Source: Utricularia gibba
Taxonomy: Eukaryota > Plantae > Magnoliophyta
NCBI GenBank assembly: GCA_002189035.1
Contig: NEEC01000009.1
Coordinates: 2,108,001 to 2,172,000 of the forward strand
Direction of reading: 5' to 3'
Length of the DNA stretch: 64,000 bases
Shown here: positions 5,742-64,000 of the stretch, piece by piece
Numbering within the stretch: position 1 is the first letter of the stretch
Layout: each line of letters begins with the position of its first letter
Made by a program: the position numbers and the translations under genes
The notes under the pieces: model-generated
What the model was told of the DNA's origin: nothing
The model's database searches: none
What the model saw: only the letters and a program-made list of their open reading frames with translations

Positions 5742-6898
<1,157 letters not shown>

Positions 6899-47168: not shown

Positions 47169-50100
47169 TCATATATCTGCCTTTTGTTTTTTGCCAGCAA
47201 CAATCTGGGATATGTGTAGGCCTCTGCTAAACGCTTGGTTAAAGAGAATCCGAGTCTGCATGTTTTGGAAGCCAGGAAGCCATGACAGAACGGCCACAGG
47301 AGCCATAACAATGACTCCAAACATAATTTCATACAGTCGAGCAACAGAGATAACAGTATCCCAAAGCCTTGTTCTTTGCAGCAGGGGTCGAAGGACTTGT
47401 GCTACCGATATTAGCCCCAGCCAGTGGGGACAAAGGCCAACAAGCTGGTAAATATATCCAGAAACTGAAACGAAGTGAATTCAAGCAGGGCAACTATGAC
47501 AATAATTGCCAGAATAACAAAAAGGAACTGAACCAAGCGATAGTAAATGTGCTCCTTGGCTGCATACTTTTCACGAGCATATGCTATTATGAGAAAAAGG
47601 ACAAGAACCACAACCACATAGATCCATGAAAACAAGTAAACAGCAATGCTCCTGCTTCCAGATGCAATCCCAATTGATATACAACTCCATATTGAAAGAA
47701 GAAGAAACGGAGGACCAAAATGATTTCTAAAAGTTTCCCCCAAAGGCCAGTGTTCCTCAGATGGTCCTGTTCCTCATACCACCACTTTTCCCAGCTTTGT
47801 TCTGCTTTCACAAAGACGCCACCTTTATACCATATCCAGTTCATGAATTCCTCGAAATCATAAACAGTTTTCAGCCAGTCAAACCCCAAAGGATTGAAGA
47901 CAAATGGTCCCAAAATCCAGGAGACCACCAAAAACCAACTGGAAATTGTCAACGCAATGTAAACAAATGTTCCTCTAGCCACTGGACTGTAAGAAGCATA
48001 AACAGTGAGTATCAACCCCAGCTCAATCGCCTTAACAAAATGACTTCGGGCATACAGCCTATAGTTCTCAGAAAAGCTTTTGTGTTGCACCACAAAACCT
48101 CGGCCAGTTGCACGGTACTTAGCACCACCGTGCAAAATAGTTCTACCAAAATAATGACCACGAGTCCCCATGGAGAATGTATAAAACACAGACGATAGCT
48201 GAAGTTGCATTGTGATAAAGTCCCAGATAGCATTCATGAATCCATGCTCAAGAGAGTTTTCAACGACCATTGGCAAAGCAGTAAAGAAACCAAGCTGGAT
48301 GATGAACTGCTGATTCAAGATAGCACCAAGCGCCCTGTTATTATTGACATTGGCCATAGCAGAGCCCTCAACGCCACTCAATGCCAGATATAGTCGTCCC
48401 CAAAGAAATGCATAAACGGTGATGACGATCATCATTGTATTGAAGAAAAACCCCACCGTAGTGTAAAAGAAAGATAGCATTCGAAAAAAGTCAAGCCTAT
48501 GACCCAACCTATACACATCACGGCTGAGCACTTGCTCGCCATTCCCACTTGCAACTTTTGCTTCAAACATAGATATTTGGTTCAAGCCAACATCTCTTCC
48601 CTTTCCAACTTGGATGTACTCATGATGTGTCACATTCCCCCTCTTAATGTGCAATTAAATCCAGCAAAAATGTCCTCACTTATATTAATAACTCTGGAAG
48701 CTTTGCTCAAACCTCCACGAGTCAAAAACCAAAACCTGTCAAACACATCTGGGTGTCCATAGTGCATTCGAATTTTCAATGGATTGGCCAAAACACGTTG
48801 GCCCAAGGTCACAAAGCTTGTTTCCTGTGCAGACATGAACCAAGCAAGTGACGATACAGAACCTGTAAAAATGTTCTCCCTAACTCCCAAAATAGTAGGT
48901 TTCCTGATACCATAGGGAACCTTAAATTCCTCTAAAAGATTCCGCATTTTCAGAGCCTCCTCAAAGTAGTTGTCTTGGTTCATATCAATGGTTTGCACAG
49001 CATCTCCCTTGTGAAAATAATGGCATGGTTCTGGTTCTCAGGTTTTCCCTCTCCAAGCTTCAAAGGGCCAGGTAATTTGACCCGGTATATCTCGACCTCC
49101 CTCTCCAGCTTCTGATCATATTTCACAAGAACAGAATAATACTCTTTCTCATCCCTTCTGGATGTCACTTCATCAACATAGGCAACACGAAGGGCTTCAT
49201 TATTTTTCATCAATTGGAGAATCTCTTCTGCACGAGGATCCTTTTTGGCCTTTTGCGAACCATAGATCTGGCATGCAACCACATAAGTAAACTTCATCAA
49301 AGCTGTTCCACGCTCATGACCTTTGAAAAAGACACTGACTGAACTACTTGCTCTACTCAATGCTCTTGAAGGTAATCTATCTGAGCTGGTGCCATCCATG
49401 TTTTCCCCATGCCTAATGAAACCCATTTGCTGAAATTCTTCCCTCAAGTCCATCTCTGAAGCAGAATCCAGGAATGCCAGCATCTCAAGCGCACGATAAT
49501 AGTACATCATGCCCCTTACTGTGCGAGCAAGAGTTTGACCTCGGTATGAAGCCCACAGCCTTAGATCTCTCAGCCTATCTGACCAGAGTTCCCGCTCACT
49601 CTTCACCCCTTCTCGGCGCATTCTTTCTAAGAAGTTTCTCCAGTCACTAGCATAGATGGTTTGCAGGTAGTACAAAATTGAAATTCCGTCTTCATTTTCT
49701 GTTCTGAGTTGCTCTTTACTGTACAAGACATCTTCACTGTAGTAGGGTGTCAAGACACTGAACGCCAGCATCTTCTCAACTTGTGGTGCATGAGGCATAT
49801 TCATGAACAAAGAATTGCTGAAGAATGCAATTCTACGTCTTGCCTCGAGATTTTCTGGAACCTCCTGCATTGAATCTCGAGAGGTAAGAATGGTATGTAA
49901 GCGCCTCACCTGGCGATAAAAAACCTCATTACTTGCAGGGGGTAAGTCAAAAGCATTCAAAAACAGCAGGTTTTCACCGGAAACGGCCTGCTGAGGAACC
50001 AGGCCATCCTCTTTCAACTGGTTGTTGTCTCTATGATCCCCAAGGAAATCCCGAATAGCAACCTCATACAGGGCCTGAAGTGCATTCACAACCTTGTTAG

Positions 50101-55415: not shown

Positions 55416-57129
55416 TCAAAGACCAAATCCAAAAACAGCCCGGATCCTGTGGAAGATATGGTCTCTCCATCCCCTTTCAGTGTTCTCAACAACAGAAGCA
55501 TTACCATACCTGAGGCAATTTTCACATTATCATCATTTTTCCCAATTGCTCACCCTTCGTCTCAAAAAAACCAAGTTAACAATGAGCAACAAGTCTACTA
55601 ACCTGTCTTCCTCTGGAATATCGGTGTGCGTGAGCTTGATGTGTGTGATGCCAGATTCAGGCTCCTCGAAAACAAGGCGGACCTGCATGATCAATCACAT
55701 ATATGGGAATGATCAACCTACAGGCTCTAGCATAGCTACCACCCCATCCATGGTGGTGGTTGCATCTATACCTGTGTAAACTCACCAACTGTATGCAACC
55801 GAAAGAGCGAAAAAAATAGAAGACCATATTGAGAAACTACATTAAACCACTTACTAAGTTCACCATTTGTATTTCAGCAAACCAAAATGACACTCACTAA
55901 TCCTCTGACACTGAAGATTTATTTATTTTTTTTTTGTCAATGGGATTAGATCATATGCTCCACTTCCACGTGGAATGTGTACCAACTCAAGAGTGCATTG
56001 AGGCTGCTCTTTTCTTAACCCCGTTAAGAAAGCCTCAATACCAATTCTGACTTCGTTGATCATTTAAACAAGCCCACAGAAGCCAACCTCCCACGCAGTT
56101 CAGTGACAAAAAATCATGAAAAACTGTGTAACAACTGAATGTAGAACGAAAAATTGAATTCCAGCACATGACAAGGAGGTCAATGTTATTCACAGTCATG
56201 GCTAAACAGCAATATGGTAAGAAATAAAAACAATAAAAGCTAGAGAATGCATATACCTTTGAAACAATGCCATCAGGCCAGCTCCCGAATCTCCATTGCT
56301 GAACAATCAATTTTCCTTCTTCCAGCTCCAAATTTTTCCCCGTGACAGACCCATCAAAAATGCTAAAGTCTCCTCCAACCTCCTTACTAATCTTCGCGTT
56401 GCTTTGAGTAAACCCCTTCCACCTGTTTTCATCCAGAAGAATCTCATACAGATCCCTCGCTCTGCAACTGAACTTTTCACTCAGTGTTATACTCTTAAAT
56501 CCCTCTTTTTTCTTATCTTCCTTCTTCTTCACCTCCTTCGACCCTGCATTGTTACTCGAAGCAACAGACCCAGAAACCGATTTCTTCTCCGTTACCTTCT
56601 TCACTTGCAAATCGTCCTTTGCAGGACCTCCTTCCGCCATTGCAGATACATACTGCCTGATTTTCTCAAACACAAACGGCTTCCCTTTAGCAACAAACGC
56701 TTCCTTCAATCGTCTCCCAACAGGCCCATCATCATTTATAGTAACCCTCATTTCAGGATCCTCCCCTGCATTCTCAACAGAGATATACGGTACTTCAACC
56801 GAGCCCTCGGTGGCCAGTATCACCCCGCCACCCTCGGAATCCGTGGTCTTCGCCTCGTACGATAAAATCAAATTCAGCTCATACCCAGGAATTATCTTCC
56901 CTTTACGAATATTAACATAGGCCTCGCCCTCCAACTTTTCTACATTCTTAATCTTAATGTAGAGATTACCTTCGCCGGAAAGAATGGGCTTTTCGGCGAG
57001 CAGATTGCTCAGGAACTTCCGCGACCAGTCGAGGCAATCGGTCTCCGCCCAGTGCCAATTGTGCACATTGATGCCGTCAGGGCGTTCCTCCACGATCCAT
57101 CGCTTGTCGCCTTCTCCCATCTTCGCCAT
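55416..57129 (-). CDS. AHA1: Activator of Hsp90 ATPase (AHA1)
   Basis: Exons 57129-56257, 55682-55603, 55509-55416 (348 aa). MAKMGEGDKRWIVEERPDGINVHNWHWAE, AYVNIRKGKIIPGYE and the AHSA1/START-like C-domain FDGSVTG...IVQQWRFGSWPDG...NTERGWRDHIFHRIRAVFGFGL*. Confidence 0.95.
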
Positions 57130-57972
57130 CTTTAACACTAGTCGTCAAAGGATGAAGCTTCTCAGAGGTAAACCAGCGAAAAATTGCCCAAGGGCGTTCT
57201 TCAGCAAAACAACAGGGTTTCGAATCTTCTGGGTTCCGAAGTCTCTAGAATCTTCACTTCCCTGCGGGAGCTTCAGTTTATTATTATGACCATTATTGTA
57301 AAACACAAAGTTATATATTTTAAAATGTTTTATCAATGTCTTAATAATCTGAAATAGCTTAACGCACCTCATACCTACAAGGCTACAACCAGAAGTGTTT
57401 GATCTAATGAACTACTCAGTTCAAAAGAGAAAAAAGAAATTATTTATGCAATAAGCAGTAGAACACTTCTCAGAATCACACATCAAAATTCTGGGGAGAT
57501 GAAGAAACAGCAGTAGTTTTGAAACCGCAATCAATCTCTACAACATCAATAGCACAAAGTCAAGTCCAAGGTCCTAAGTTCACTAAGACCAGACAGAAGG
57601 CTTCTGCAAGATAGTGTTGATCTAAACGAGCCAACTTTACATTCTGGAGCAGGAAACCATCAGACTGTGCTTCAGATACGATGGGGAGGAACTTCAAAGA
57701 AGACTGGAGAGGGTAAAAGAAACTCACATTGCAGAGTTGAGGGCGCCCATCCTTTATTCTTTCAGCTTCAAGGAACACTAACTAATTCAACTTCAGTATG
57801 ACAAAGATGGTTTTATGATCCAAGGGCTCTCGCAGGGAAGGTACGTACACCTGGAAAAATAAAATAAACGGGTGGAATGATCTATAATCATTACATTTAC
57901 TGGTATAGTTTTTCACTATACCAGTAAAGAGCCTGATGGGTGGGAGAGAAATTCAGCACACACCTATCCTGG

Positions 57973-59322: not shown

Positions 59323-60021
59323 ACTCTCCCCCACATTTTACATTTTACTTACAAAAATATATTTTTAAACCAGGTGGAGTTCAAATTTGTCTTTTCCTCT
59401 TTCAATTAATAAAATTATTTTTATTCCTCGTACGTTGATGTCTTGAAAAATTTCTTCAAGTTCTTTAATTATTTCAAAATATTAGTATTTTGCATTGTGC
59501 AAAATGGGAATTAAAAAGTATTTTTGTTCTTACATTATTTTTTAAAATGTTATTTTGAATAAATACAAGCGATGATATTCAATCAGTTTCAGTCATTTGA
59601 TTCCAAGTGTTAGAACTATCTTGTGTGTTTCCCGGTGCTTCTCTTAAGGCGAGATATGTTAACATACAAATACAAACCAGACATATCAAAGAAGACGATA
59701 GATGCATCCAAATCCAACTTCTGCTTTGGACTCATCCATCCACAGGGGCCGGCCCCTGAGCTCAGACACAACAATGCAATTGAAAGAGAAGTACCCATAG
59801 AGCAAGTGGCCTCAGCACAAATGTGCAACTGGAAACATCCCCCCCAGATGCTGAAATCCCATCAACATTGCCTAACACACAGTCGCCAAAATCGTTCGGA
59901 AGTAGTCGTCTAGTCGAGTTCATCGCCACGTGAAATACGCCTCTAGGGCATACAACCCCGACCCTTATCAGGGATAGCTTTTTTTTGCATGGTATGAAAT
60001 GAATCTGTAGAAAAATGGACA

Positions 60022-60743
60022 TCAAAGATGGAGGTCGAGGCTCAAGTGATCTTGATTGGTGGGCTTGGATTTGTAGCCAAACTGGATCTGGGAAGCGGCT
60101 CCCATTGCTGATTTGAGCTGATCATCTCTTGGTGTGACTACGGGAGAAGCATGGGGAGCTTGGATTTGCCACATGGCTAGTGGGCTGCCGTTGATTGGTT
60201 GCCTCTGGCTGTAAGGATTGTAGAACCAAGCATTGGAGCCATAGGTGTTGGTGGTGGTGCTACTGTTCCATGGATGATGATGATGATAAGCCATGGGGAA
60301 ATTGGGGGTTGCTCCAATTCTTCCATAGTTGTTCATCATGCTGCAGAAGCCTGCAGCCTCAGACATCATGGCTGATTGGAGGTGGGCTCGCTTCGCGTGC
60401 TGGCGCTCGCGTTTGTGTGCGTTTTGATGTCCTCCAAGAGCTTGAGAAGTAGGGAAGTTTCTGCAGCAGTAGTGGCACTCAAACTTCCTGCTGCTGCTGT
60501 CTTCATTGACACCTCCTGCTTTAGTATTGTTGCTCCCTTCACCATCTTGAACATTGCTGCTGTTTTCAGTCGACTGATCGGAAAGATCATTGGACATAAC
60601 AGCGGCGGCGCCGCCTCCAAATTCCTTCCCAAACAGACGGATGGCTCCAGCCTTGTCCTTGGCGGGGAGGGACGGATGAAGGGTAGTTGAGAGAAGGAGC
60701 TTACATTCATGAAGTCATGAGTTTCTCTATCTGCTTTTTCCAT
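60022..60743 (-). CDS. Single C2H2 zinc finger protein, GIS/ZFP8-like, with C-terminal EAR motif; 1-nt frameshift at 60664-60667
   Basis: MEKADRETHDFMNVSSFSQLPFIRP joins AKDKAGAIRLFGKEFGG after +1 C. RKFECHYCCRNFPTSQALGGHQNAHKRERQHAKR (QALGGH finger) and terminal DHLSLDLHL (EAR). 723 nt = 240 aa. Confidence 0.93.
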
Positions 60744-62498
60744 AGAAGAGAGGAAGAGGGGGCTTTGGCTTTAGTCTAGTGGTTTTCTGTTTATCCTGAA
60801 AGAGAGTGAGGAAGAGGGAAGTTGCAGTTGGAAGTGGGAAAAGAGAGGGGAGATTTGGGAATATTAAAGTATGAGGAAGAGATCTGTCATCGGTATGAGT
60901 TGTGTTGTGGGTCCTAGAAATGGAGTGTTTGAGAGATAGATCCATGGATCAACATTCAAAACCAACACCCATAGTATAGATCAGCCAACAAAAGGAGTCA
61001 CTTTCTTCTTTATAATGTTCATGCTCAATTCTACTTCTTCACAAAACATCTCTTCCAACTTGCTCTAATTCTTAATTAAGAGCAGCATCAAGGTGGAGTG
61101 TGTTGAAATACAAAATTCGATGGATCTAGTATACGTGAATTCTAAATACACAATAAACATAAATCATTATAATGATACATAATATCTTATATATTTAATT
61201 ATTTTACTTTTATTTACAAATTAAATTACTTGTTCTAATAGAATGAATTGAAAAAGGTAGGCATCAGCCCTTGTCAGGTTGAAGAATGAATTAGGAATCC
61301 CACATGGCCCTTGTCATGTGGAGGGTTGCATTTCATGATCCTTTTCTGCCCATTGGATCTCCTCCTTGCTCTCCCTACCCCTTGAAGAGTTAGGACCAGG
61401 AGCAAGTACTCATTTGCCACTTACTAAAACAACAACAGCATGGCGTTGGCATCTGCATAAGTTCCCATTGTGAAGTGGTCCTCCAGCTGCCGGCTCCACC
61501 AAAACCTAAAATCACACTACTTAAGAAGTACTTACTACACCTTACTGTGTTGTCTGATTTCCAAATCTGTGTATTCTGTGACCTCTTGGTGGCATTCTCC
61601 AAGGCAAAAGAAACAGAACTTAGTAGTCAAACCTGAAACTGAATGCCTGAAACCCTCCTTCTCATTTACTAATACATATGAGGAGCATTAAATTTCCCTT
61701 AATGAAGAGGTGTAATCATCTTGTACTACATTTCACTTTGTCTCCCTCCTTTCTCTCTATTCCCAACCCATTCTTTCTTCTTGCCCCTTCTCTGCTCCCA
61801 CTGTCGCTCATGTTCCTTGGATGTGTCACGGTATCAAAAAGCAAAAGATCAGCTTTTTAACACACCAGATCCCAATACTTAGGCTAGCGTTTTGGCTTCT
61901 TCTAGCGCAATATTCTTGACATGAAATGGGCTGGAATCAGGGTTTTGCTAATTCAGAATCCGATCACGTTTGGGGGAGGTTAAAAGGCAGCAGACGGAAG
62001 TTGCTAAAAATACACGTCTTTCGTCTCCGACTCAGAAACAATGAAGCATATTCCAGGTTGGGTTAGAGGTGGCCGCTGGGGATCCACCGGTGCTGAATCT
62101 CTGCATTTACTGGTGGTCGGAGGGAGTAGAGTAAATGTGCGTATGGTGATAGTCATGGGTGCTGCGCTTTGACCGATCTTTTCTGCGTTGTATTTTTGCG
62201 GTAAATCGAGGAGCAATGTCTCTTTCGAGGTTTTGTTCATCAAATTCACTTGGTTCTGAGTGGAGGGGGAGACCCAGTTTTCTGATGAAACCGCTACCAC
62301 CACCATCTTCTTCCTTTTCCGCCATTAACAGCTCGATGCGTCGACATCATCAGATGCTGGCAGTAGGGGACCGAGAAATAAAAACCCGCCTTCAATTTCT
62401 ACCTGAATTATTCCATCATTTATTATTATTACATGAATATTTTCCAATCAAACAATCCAAACCCAGGCCTAGTTGCTCCATTTTTCAGCTTACTACTC

Positions 62499-62550
62499 AT
62501 CCCACATCGAATGTTAAACAAAATAATCTTTGCTCATGCCGTTATAAATA
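62499..62550 (+). promoter_or_regulatory. Plant snRNA-type promoter: USE plus TATA box with Pol II spacing
   Basis: ATCCCACATCG at 62499-62509 is a perfect match to the RTCCCACATCG USE consensus. TATAAATA at 62543-62550 follows after a 33-bp spacer (about 32-36 bp in Pol II snRNA genes, about 24 bp in Pol III genes). Confidence 0.75.
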
Positions 62551-62574
62551 CCCCGCGATTTCAATTTCTGCTTG

Positions 62575-62860
62575 ACATCTGGATTTCCTTTTCCTTTCTT
62601 GTATTGTAGTAGAAGCGGTAAATGGAGGAAACAGAGTCGCTATTGGGATGGCTATGATGGGTGAGTAAGAGGAGTGGGTGGCAGGGTCATTCTCGTCACA
62701 AAATTGTTCCCCTTACTTCCTTTTCAGACAAGGTGGACTGAATACGATACTGCGTGTTCGTAAGCGTGCATCGTATATCAACACCCCCCCTTCGCTATTC
62801 CACAATTTCACTTTCACCCCCATCCCCTGCTCTACTATTACTACTGCTACAAATAAGACA
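62575..62860 (+). ncRNA. Candidate structured non-coding RNA of unknown family downstream of the USE-TATA promoter
   Basis: Predicted +1 near A62575 (TATA at -32, USE at -76). No ORF longer than 11 codons from an ATG in the first 170 nt. Manual folding gives five consecutive hairpins over 62578-62776, or an alternative long foldback pairing 62597-62686 with 62788-62858. The 3' end is not defined. Confidence 0.45.
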
Positions 62861-64000
62861 TGATATGATTTAATTGATATCCATAAATGAGATGTGGTTT
62901 AAATTTACAATAAACAACATTCTTCAAATCTCAAATAAGGTCTCATGATGAGATGTTTAAATTTATTCTATATTAAATACGAGTAAAATTAATTTACATA
63001 AAAAATAGATAATTTAGAAAACATGAGGGTATTTTGTAGAGAATCTTATTAAAGAAATGGTAATTTATCACGTGTTTGATATAAAATGAGCGTATTTTGA
63101 TAGATTGATAAATGAAATATTCTTGACTCTGATAGAATGTGAAAGATTGGTTTATGCTAAATAACACATGTGAATCTCATATTTAATATTATGGATTAAA
63201 TATCAAATAATACAAATTCATGTATGGTATGGGTTTAATTAATCTTATGATAAAAAAAATCTGTATATTCAATTATCTTTAAAATTAAATTATAGAATTT
63301 ATTTTAGACAGTAACATATAAAAATAAATAATATTCTTTAGATTGAAAAAAGGGGTAGTAATGAGGTATATCACATACTTGCAGATTTGGATGAATATTT
63401 TTGTGACCAAGTGTTTGTGAAGATGGTGAGCCCCGCCATGTCTCTCTACCACCTTCTCTGGGCGATGGTCTTCCCATCAACACTTAGACAAAAGATGAGT
63501 GTCTTAGAGAATCATTCAACGTTAATTTCAGGTCCACTTGGACCCCAACATGCTCAATTACTACAATCACTTCACTTAATACCAATTCCAGGTTGACTCA
63601 TGCATTTTTGAACATGCATGTGAGAAAATTATTCATCTTTAATATTAATTTTTTTATTTAATCTATGTAAGAAAGAAATTGAGAAATTTTAGTAGTGGTA
63701 AGGGTGCACCAGATAGTGTTACACCCTATGGGAGAACTGTTTATAATTTGTGATATATGTGCCTATTTAGTTCTTAAATGTTCCAGAAAATTGTATACAA
63801 TACATATTATTTAAACTTTATGGTATATCGTTATTTTATATTTGAAAATAAACAAATATTTATAATAAAAAATTATAATTTGTGTGAGTGGGAAAAGAAT
63901 GGGGGGAAAAATGAATAAAAAAAGAGCAGGAAAGGGTAAATGTGTCAGTACCTCAAAAACAACCCTTTTAGGACCACAAAAAGTCACTGGTCCATCAGCA

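Follow-up and report, generated by a model that had tools for sequence, protein, structure and literature searches.

A candidate orphan snRNA-type promoter in the upstream region of a ZFP8/GIS-type gene of Utricularia gibba

Background

The plant U-snRNA genes transcribed by RNA polymerase II (U1, U2, U4, U5, U11, U12 and U4atac) share an upstream sequence element (USE; RTCCCACATCG) and a TATA box about 33 bp further on. The same two promoter elements are found in the plant Pol III type-3 genes (U6, U3, 7SL, MRP and telomerase RNA/AtR8), among which telomerase RNA is about 250-300 nt long and poorly conserved in sequence. To our knowledge, the USE is all but confined to genes of the snRNA type, with the trans-species MIRNA loci of Cuscuta as the one reported exception.

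With Pol II, 66-67 bp separate the USE from the start, and with Pol III the distance is 54-55 bp (bioRxiv 10.1101/2022.07.06.498962); in the interface-induced MIRNA loci of Cuscuta campestris a perfect USE precedes a non-snRNA locus (bioRxiv 10.1101/2022.07.06.498962). The plant snRNA 3'-box consensus is CA(N)3-10AGTNNAA (PMC5079582); in the same source, which cites Connelly and Filipowicz (1993), 3' processing of plant snRNAs is described as independent of the snRNA promoter.

A locus with this promoter layout is described here from Utricularia gibba, in a 64,000-nt window (the whole stretch of DNA that was analysed, to which all positions refer unless a related locus is named). A first-pass annotation had proposed a new structured, snRNA-like RNA gene downstream of the promoter. 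With a probability of about one half, we read the site as an orphan Pol II core promoter of the snRNA type, specific to this lineage and lying over ordinary intergenic DNA, in the approximately 3-kb upstream regulatory region of a ZFP8/GIS-type gene.

Promoter elements

Direct reading of the sequence confirmed the perfect USE and the TATA box noted at first pass, with a gap of exactly 33 bp between them (Table 1). The USE agrees with RTCCCACATCG and lies at the distance of approximately 70-80 bp before the start that is characteristic of plant Pol II U-snRNA genes, while the TATA box follows it at about four helical turns, as in those genes. The transcription start was placed as listed in Table 1 because of the published Pol II USE-to-start distance. 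By the published distances, the positions of the start and of the pyrimidine tract fit a plant Pol II core promoter, and the Pol II layout that had been proposed (USE, TATA box, spacing and a plausible start) holds as a whole.

The layout of Pol III type-3 genes is a different one, with approximately 23-25 bp between USE and TATA box and no internal run of four or more T residues. Here the gap is 33 bp, and TTTT occurs both within the pyrimidine tract, approximately 15 nt after the predicted start, and at 62721-62724, two runs that would stop Pol III early. With the first of them so close to the predicted start, an extended product of Pol III is not what one would expect.

Table 1. Positions of the promoter elements, the neighbouring gene, the conserved sequences and the possible transcript features (L numbers designate individual ZFP8 loci of other Lamiales)
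Feature	Position	Strand	Remarks
USE ATCCCACATCG	62499-62509	+	Perfect plant snRNA upstream sequence element; direct sequence reading
TATA box TATAAATA	62543-62550	+	33 bp after USE, Pol II-type spacing
Predicted transcription start	62575-62577	+	A 62575 or CA 62576-62577; 66-68 bp after USE
Pyrimidine tract with TTTT at 62589-62592	62584-62599	+	Immediately past predicted start
GT-AG intron-like segment GTGAGTAA...CTTTTCAG	62661-62727	+	67 nt; 52% A+T
AATAAA	62909-62914	+	Possible poly(A) signal if the transcript is mRNA-like; role inferred
ZFP8/GIS-type C2H2 zinc-finger gene	60022-60743	-	Pfam zf-C2H2_6; top matches Lamiales ZFP8/GIS, ~50% identity
Collinear anchor nearer ZFP8	61385-61410	.	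Matches Paulownia L001 7593-7568, 88% over 26 nt; order kept with block
Conserved non-coding block, ~45-60 nt	62701-62760	.	Core CAAGGTGGACTGAAT at 62729-62743; blastn and pattern matches
Collinear anchor further out (CATGCATGTGAG-type)	63612-63625	.	Exact 13-14-mers, L001 3209-3197, L003 2447-2434
Strongly conserved block, ~110-400 nt	L001 4324-4644; L005 287-677; L004 5049-5160; L003 2732-2896; L009 ~1200-1290

The frequency with which such a pair should arise by chance was estimated from a first-order Markov model of the window together with the frequency of TATAWAW boxes measured in it. For a perfect 11-mer USE with such a box 31-36 bp further on, the expectation is approximately 0.26 occurrences per 100 Mb of DNA of the window's composition, and 0.56 if a 10-mer USE is accepted. 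The pair is improbable at one locus; by this estimate, about one chance pair would be expected when an entire plant genome is searched. The TATA-box word TATAAATA itself is present in 13 copies in the 64,000-nt window, counting both strands. Perfect USE 10-mers were found twice in the window (0.077 expected), and USE-like 10-mers with at most one mismatch were mildly over-represented, with eight copies against 2.9 expected.

The second perfect USE 10-mer, AATCCCACATCG, is located at 6519-6528 on the plus strand, and no TATA box was found 20-40 bp downstream of it. It sits between two ORFs of a minus-strand gene for PsbO, the manganese-stabilising protein (Pfam MSP, E 1e-77), most likely in an intron, and is an apparent example of a USE arisen by chance.

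These figures bear directly on the main rival of the preferred reading, namely that a fortuitous USE 11-mer and a TATA box happen to stand together, silent, in the AT-rich intergenic DNA upstream of ZFP8. The expectation of about one chance pair in a genome scan, the solitary USE of the PsbO intron in the same window and the excess of USE-like 10-mers all speak for pure coincidence. Against it, the agreement at 11 of 11 USE positions and 8 of 8 positions of TATAAATA, combined with a gap of exactly 33 bp, is jointly about ten times rarer than the loose estimate given above, and the start and pyrimidine tract fit as well. We regard coincidence as rather unlikely, while taking it more seriously than any other rival.

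The ZFP8/GIS locus and its conserved sequences

The USE-TATA site lies 1.8-2.1 kb upstream of the ZFP8/GIS-type gene and points away from it. The first exon of a gene for AHA1 (activator of Hsp90 ATPase) was located at 56035-57138 on the minus strand. The best protein identities to Lamiales relatives were approximately 50-56% for ZFP8 and 80-81% for AHA1, and in Handroanthus both genes are carried on one 135-kb contig, which indicates that the neighbourhood is syntenic across Lamiales.

In the window the ZFP8/GIS gene is broken into two overlapping frames (60366-60743 and 60022-60597). RNA-like contigs from the same species have additional letters at 60663 (+G), 60757 (+G), 60608 (+CGC) and 60021 (+T), and by frame arithmetic the G at 60663 joins both ZFP8 frames. 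The window probably contains small assembly indels or represents a variant allele, and exact spacings elsewhere in it may consequently be one base off.

The window was compared with ten ZFP8 loci of nine Lamiales species, taken with 10 kb of flanking DNA on either side: Paulownia (two loci), Erythranthe, Primulina, Buddleja, Andrographis, Salvia, Handroanthus, Sesamum and Striga. The syntenic search suggested at first pass gave a negative answer, since none of the ten loci had a USE (allowing one mismatch) with a TATA box in the ZFP8 upstream region, and no homologue of the proposed RNA body, from which covariation could have been assessed, was present in any of them. Judged against these ten Lamiales loci, the Utricularia gibba genome alone has the USE-TATA pair and, apart from the block described below, the "RNA body". 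That the promoter is unconserved in all ten is a further point in favour of coincidence.

One part of the interval is conserved. The non-coding block at 62701-62760 was found in five of the ten loci, from four species (both Paulownia loci, Primulina, Buddleja and Sesamum), with a shared core, CAAGGTGGAYTGAAT, preceded by TTGTTCC and a pyrimidine run. In all five it lies on the upstream side of ZFP8, with its relative orientation unchanged. The block takes in the 3' arm of the third hairpin that was proposed at first pass, together with the "intron acceptor" and the beginning of "exon 2". Three anchors, the block included, are collinear between the window and L001, and two (the block and the 63612 anchor) between the window and L003; each match of the 63612-63625 anchor is weak on its own. 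Among themselves, the other Lamiales have at least ten collinear conserved blocks upstream of ZFP8. Because these blocks and anchors are collinear, the interval is considered to be part of a conserved ZFP8 regulatory landscape. With its order and orientation kept in several families, the block has the properties of a conserved non-coding sequence of the ZFP8/GIS gene.

Two other identities of the block in the other Lamiales were considered and rejected. As a miRNA or structured RNA it reached a consensus fold of only -16 kcal/mol, in which the main hairpin has 13 pairs, and it had no Rfam match; as a small peptide gene, on either strand, it had start codons and frames that vary between species.

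In Paulownia, Buddleja, Primulina and Sesamum, a strongly conserved block of approximately 110-400 nt was observed in the ZFP8 upstream region, and Paulownia and Primulina are 84% identical over 112 nt of it. The block had no gene call, no Rfam match and only a weak consensus fold; an open frame (...FFIGNISFNPPCLKER...) is kept on the ZFP8 strand, and its start codons are inconsistent.

Transcript evidence and the intron-like segment

Four sets of RNA-like contigs bearing the same species label were aligned to 60000-64000. The contigs covered only the ZFP8 gene (60000-60811), at 99% identity or more, and none was found between 60940 and 64000 in these four small sets, whose library type is unrecorded and which, if poly(A)-selected, could miss an RNA of this kind. 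A single run search likewise found no RNA run containing the stretch. The gap in contig coverage speaks against abundant polyadenylated RNA from this region in the material sampled and is compatible with a short or non-polyadenylated RNA. The lack of an RNA contig over the region is also what coincidence would predict.

A GT-AG intron-like segment coinciding with the third hairpin had been pointed out at first pass and was verified: the GT is at 62661 and the AG at 62726-62727, and both splice sites have good words. The segment is, at 52% A+T, less AT-rich than the "exon 1" before it (58%), which is unusual for a dicot intron, and the "intron" is doubtful because it is not AU-rich. Of the five related loci with the conserved block, four read CAA at the acceptor AG.

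If the segment were a true intron, 62577-62660 (84 nt) could be an untranslated alternative first exon, spliced from the donor at 62661 to a plus-strand gene past the end of the window. The strong donor (GG/GTGAGT), the pyrimidine-rich leader and the lack of a long ORF would suit such an exon. Nevertheless, from 62860 to 64000 there is no coding exon and no Pfam match on either strand, the exon is untouched by any RNA contig, and the collinear ZFP8 anchors reach as far as 63625, all of which makes this arrangement improbable.

Coding on the plus strand was rejected, as the spliced and unspliced forms hold only ORFs of 8-11 codons from an ATG, and an open frame of approximately 73 codons, which has no ATG, gave no Pfam match. 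On the opposite strand from the USE, and 175 bp from it, a 72-codon ATG ORF (62107-62325, minus strand) terminates in the donor-like word GTAAAT. Pfam, the Atlas and the RNA contigs all gave no support for this ORF, which is probably not a gene; a bidirectional promoter shared with a minus-strand gene is therefore unsupported.

Repeats and mobile elements

A USE-TATA pair could also have been left behind by a mobile element, for example as the solo LTR of a TRIM, or by a duplicated snRNA gene together with its promoter. No second copy of any part of 61000-64000 was present within the window, the one TG...CA frame that was tried is flanked by TTACA and TGATA without a matching 5-bp duplication, and no snRNA remnant was detected at E<=10. 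On these results from the window, a relic of either kind is considered very unlikely.

RNA gene signals and secondary structure

The search of Rfam agreed with the first-pass view that no known family is represented: no relevant match was obtained at gathering scores in the whole window or at E<=10 in 62400-63100, where the only hits (mir-204, SNORA61 and SNORD75, all of 13-14 bits) are noise. Known snRNA covariance models gave no match at the gathering score or at E<=10. The sole RNA family match in the window at gathering scores was a snoJ33 C/D-box snoRNA (Rfam RF00315, 75 bits) at 49442-49521 on the minus strand.

An Sm site and a telomere-type template had both been reported as lacking, and neither was found on closer search. 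No RAUUUUGR-type site occurs in 62560-63380, the sole loose match being at 63384, and no template word for six telomere repeat types was present even with one mismatch. In addition, the plant 3' box had no match in 62560-63400. Two snoRNA identities were rejected by eye: for a C/D snoRNA, the boxes AUGAUGG (62651) and CUGA (62737) lack a terminal stem, and for an H/ACA snoRNA the AGACAA fits the H box but no in-register ACA box exists in the window or its relatives.

The claim of a structured RNA depended on a series of hand-folded stems. The pairings TCTG/CAGA, TTTCCTTT/GGAGGAAA, TTTCT/AGAAG, GAGTAAG/CTTACTT and ATACGAT/ATCGTAT can indeed be read in the sequence, and most of them recur in the predicted sub-folds, but they do not go beyond chance. 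In a comparison with shuffled sequences, which had been named beforehand as a check capable of refuting the structure, the 286-nt segment folded at z -1.62 on the plus strand and -0.31 on the minus strand, neither being significant, and 13 of 200 shuffles folded as well as the plus strand. Five sub-regions gave z values of -1.00, -1.58, -0.88, +0.59 and -0.47, that of -1.58 belonging to the region of the third hairpin (62661-62727). Over this range, -1.62 to +0.59, the stable and conserved secondary structure of a plant Pol II U-snRNA is lacking. The UUCG loop said to cap the last hairpin was not reproduced, the predicted fold of 62740-62778 having a CGUA loop instead. The suspicion, voiced with the original proposal, that purine/pyrimidine skew inflates the pairing proved to be well founded: a purine-rich tract at approximately 62640-62690 faces a pyrimidine-rich one at approximately 62780-62830. 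The apparent stems reflect the pairing of these purine-rich and pyrimidine-rich halves and not selection for structure.

Taken together, these results leave little of the first-pass proposal of a new structured snRNA-like non-coding RNA, of approximately 290 nt and made by Pol II from the USE promoter. In its favour, the promoter is laid out as in plant Pol II snRNA genes, and the G-U-rich stems work only on the plus strand, which also has the lower of the two z values. On the other hand, neither the whole segment nor any part of it folds significantly, the Sm site, 3' box and Rfam relative are missing, the ten syntenic loci offer no homologue and hence no covariation, and the sole conserved piece is a DNA-level block that is promoterless in other species. 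Such an RNA is therefore highly unlikely.

A MIRNA-like foldback, either miR482/2118-like or USE-driven, can be dismissed as scarcely credible: USE-driven MIRNA loci do exist in Cuscuta campestris (bioRxiv 10.1101/2022.07.06.498962) and the two skewed halves are able to pair, but the longest inverted arms measure 14 nt (79% complementarity) and 12 nt (83%), so that the duplex falls far short of 21 nt, no miRNA family scores above noise, and in the Cuscuta loci the start lies approximately 55 bp after the USE and the terminators are T runs, where this locus has Pol II spacing.

Proposed interpretation

The preferred reading thus remains that of an orphan snRNA-type core promoter. The DNA downstream of it is species-specific intergenic sequence together with one conserved non-coding block of the ZFP8 landscape, and is not the body of an snRNA-like gene.

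From the promoter elements and the sequence words beyond them we infer how the locus would behave if it is active. If the promoter fires, SNAPc and TBP would recruit Pol II to it. The product would be short, unstructured, non-coding and mRNA-like, with an 84-nt pyrimidine-rich first exon and perhaps the 67-nt intron. Transcription might end past the AATAAA at 62909, and the RNA, with nothing beyond the very short ORFs described above, would probably be unstable. Handling in the manner of an mRNA is proposed because plant snRNA promoters are uncoupled from 3'-box processing and no 3' box is present here. The 1993 work of Connelly and Filipowicz reportedly found that a USE promoter can yield mRNA-type RNA.

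More speculatively, Utricularia gibba may have a set of non-snRNA units, mRNA-like or non-coding, that are driven by USE-TATA pairs with Pol II spacing. This locus would be one of them, and a species-specific non-coding transcript running from approximately 62577 through the Lamiales-conserved block could influence ZFP8 expression. We consider this wider proposal unlikely.

Comparison with known systems

With the failure of the structured-RNA reading a tempting false lead is removed, and a deeply conserved non-coding block has been defined upstream of ZFP8/GIS-type regulators of trichomes and epidermis in Lamiales. In this the locus resembles the conserved non-coding sequences found upstream of developmental transcription-factor genes, as the block and its two anchors share order and orientation across Lamiales families. 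The block explains part of the interval only, and the genome-specific USE-TATA pair is not explained by it.

Compared with the plant Pol II U-snRNA genes, the locus has the same USE, TATA position and predicted start distance, whereas the snRNA body, Sm site, 3' box and stable fold of those genes are missing and the unit is unconserved and single-copy in the window. The Pol III type-3 genes use the same two elements, and telomerase RNA is similar in length to the RNA that had been proposed and likewise poorly conserved; here, in contrast, the spacing is one helical turn too long, a TTTT comes early and there is no telomere-template word.

The nearest parallel for a perfect USE before a non-snRNA locus is provided by the interface-induced MIRNA loci of Cuscuta campestris. 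In those loci, which form a large family, the spacing is U6-like, the terminators are T runs and the hairpins are those of true miRNAs, whereas the present one has Pol II spacing, no hairpin and no known family. If the USE-TATA pair does serve non-snRNA units in Utricularia gibba, SNAPc-dependent transcription would extend beyond the snRNAs in this lineage, and the locus would stand as a counterpart, at Pol II spacing, to the USE-driven MIRNA loci that Cuscuta has at Pol III spacing.
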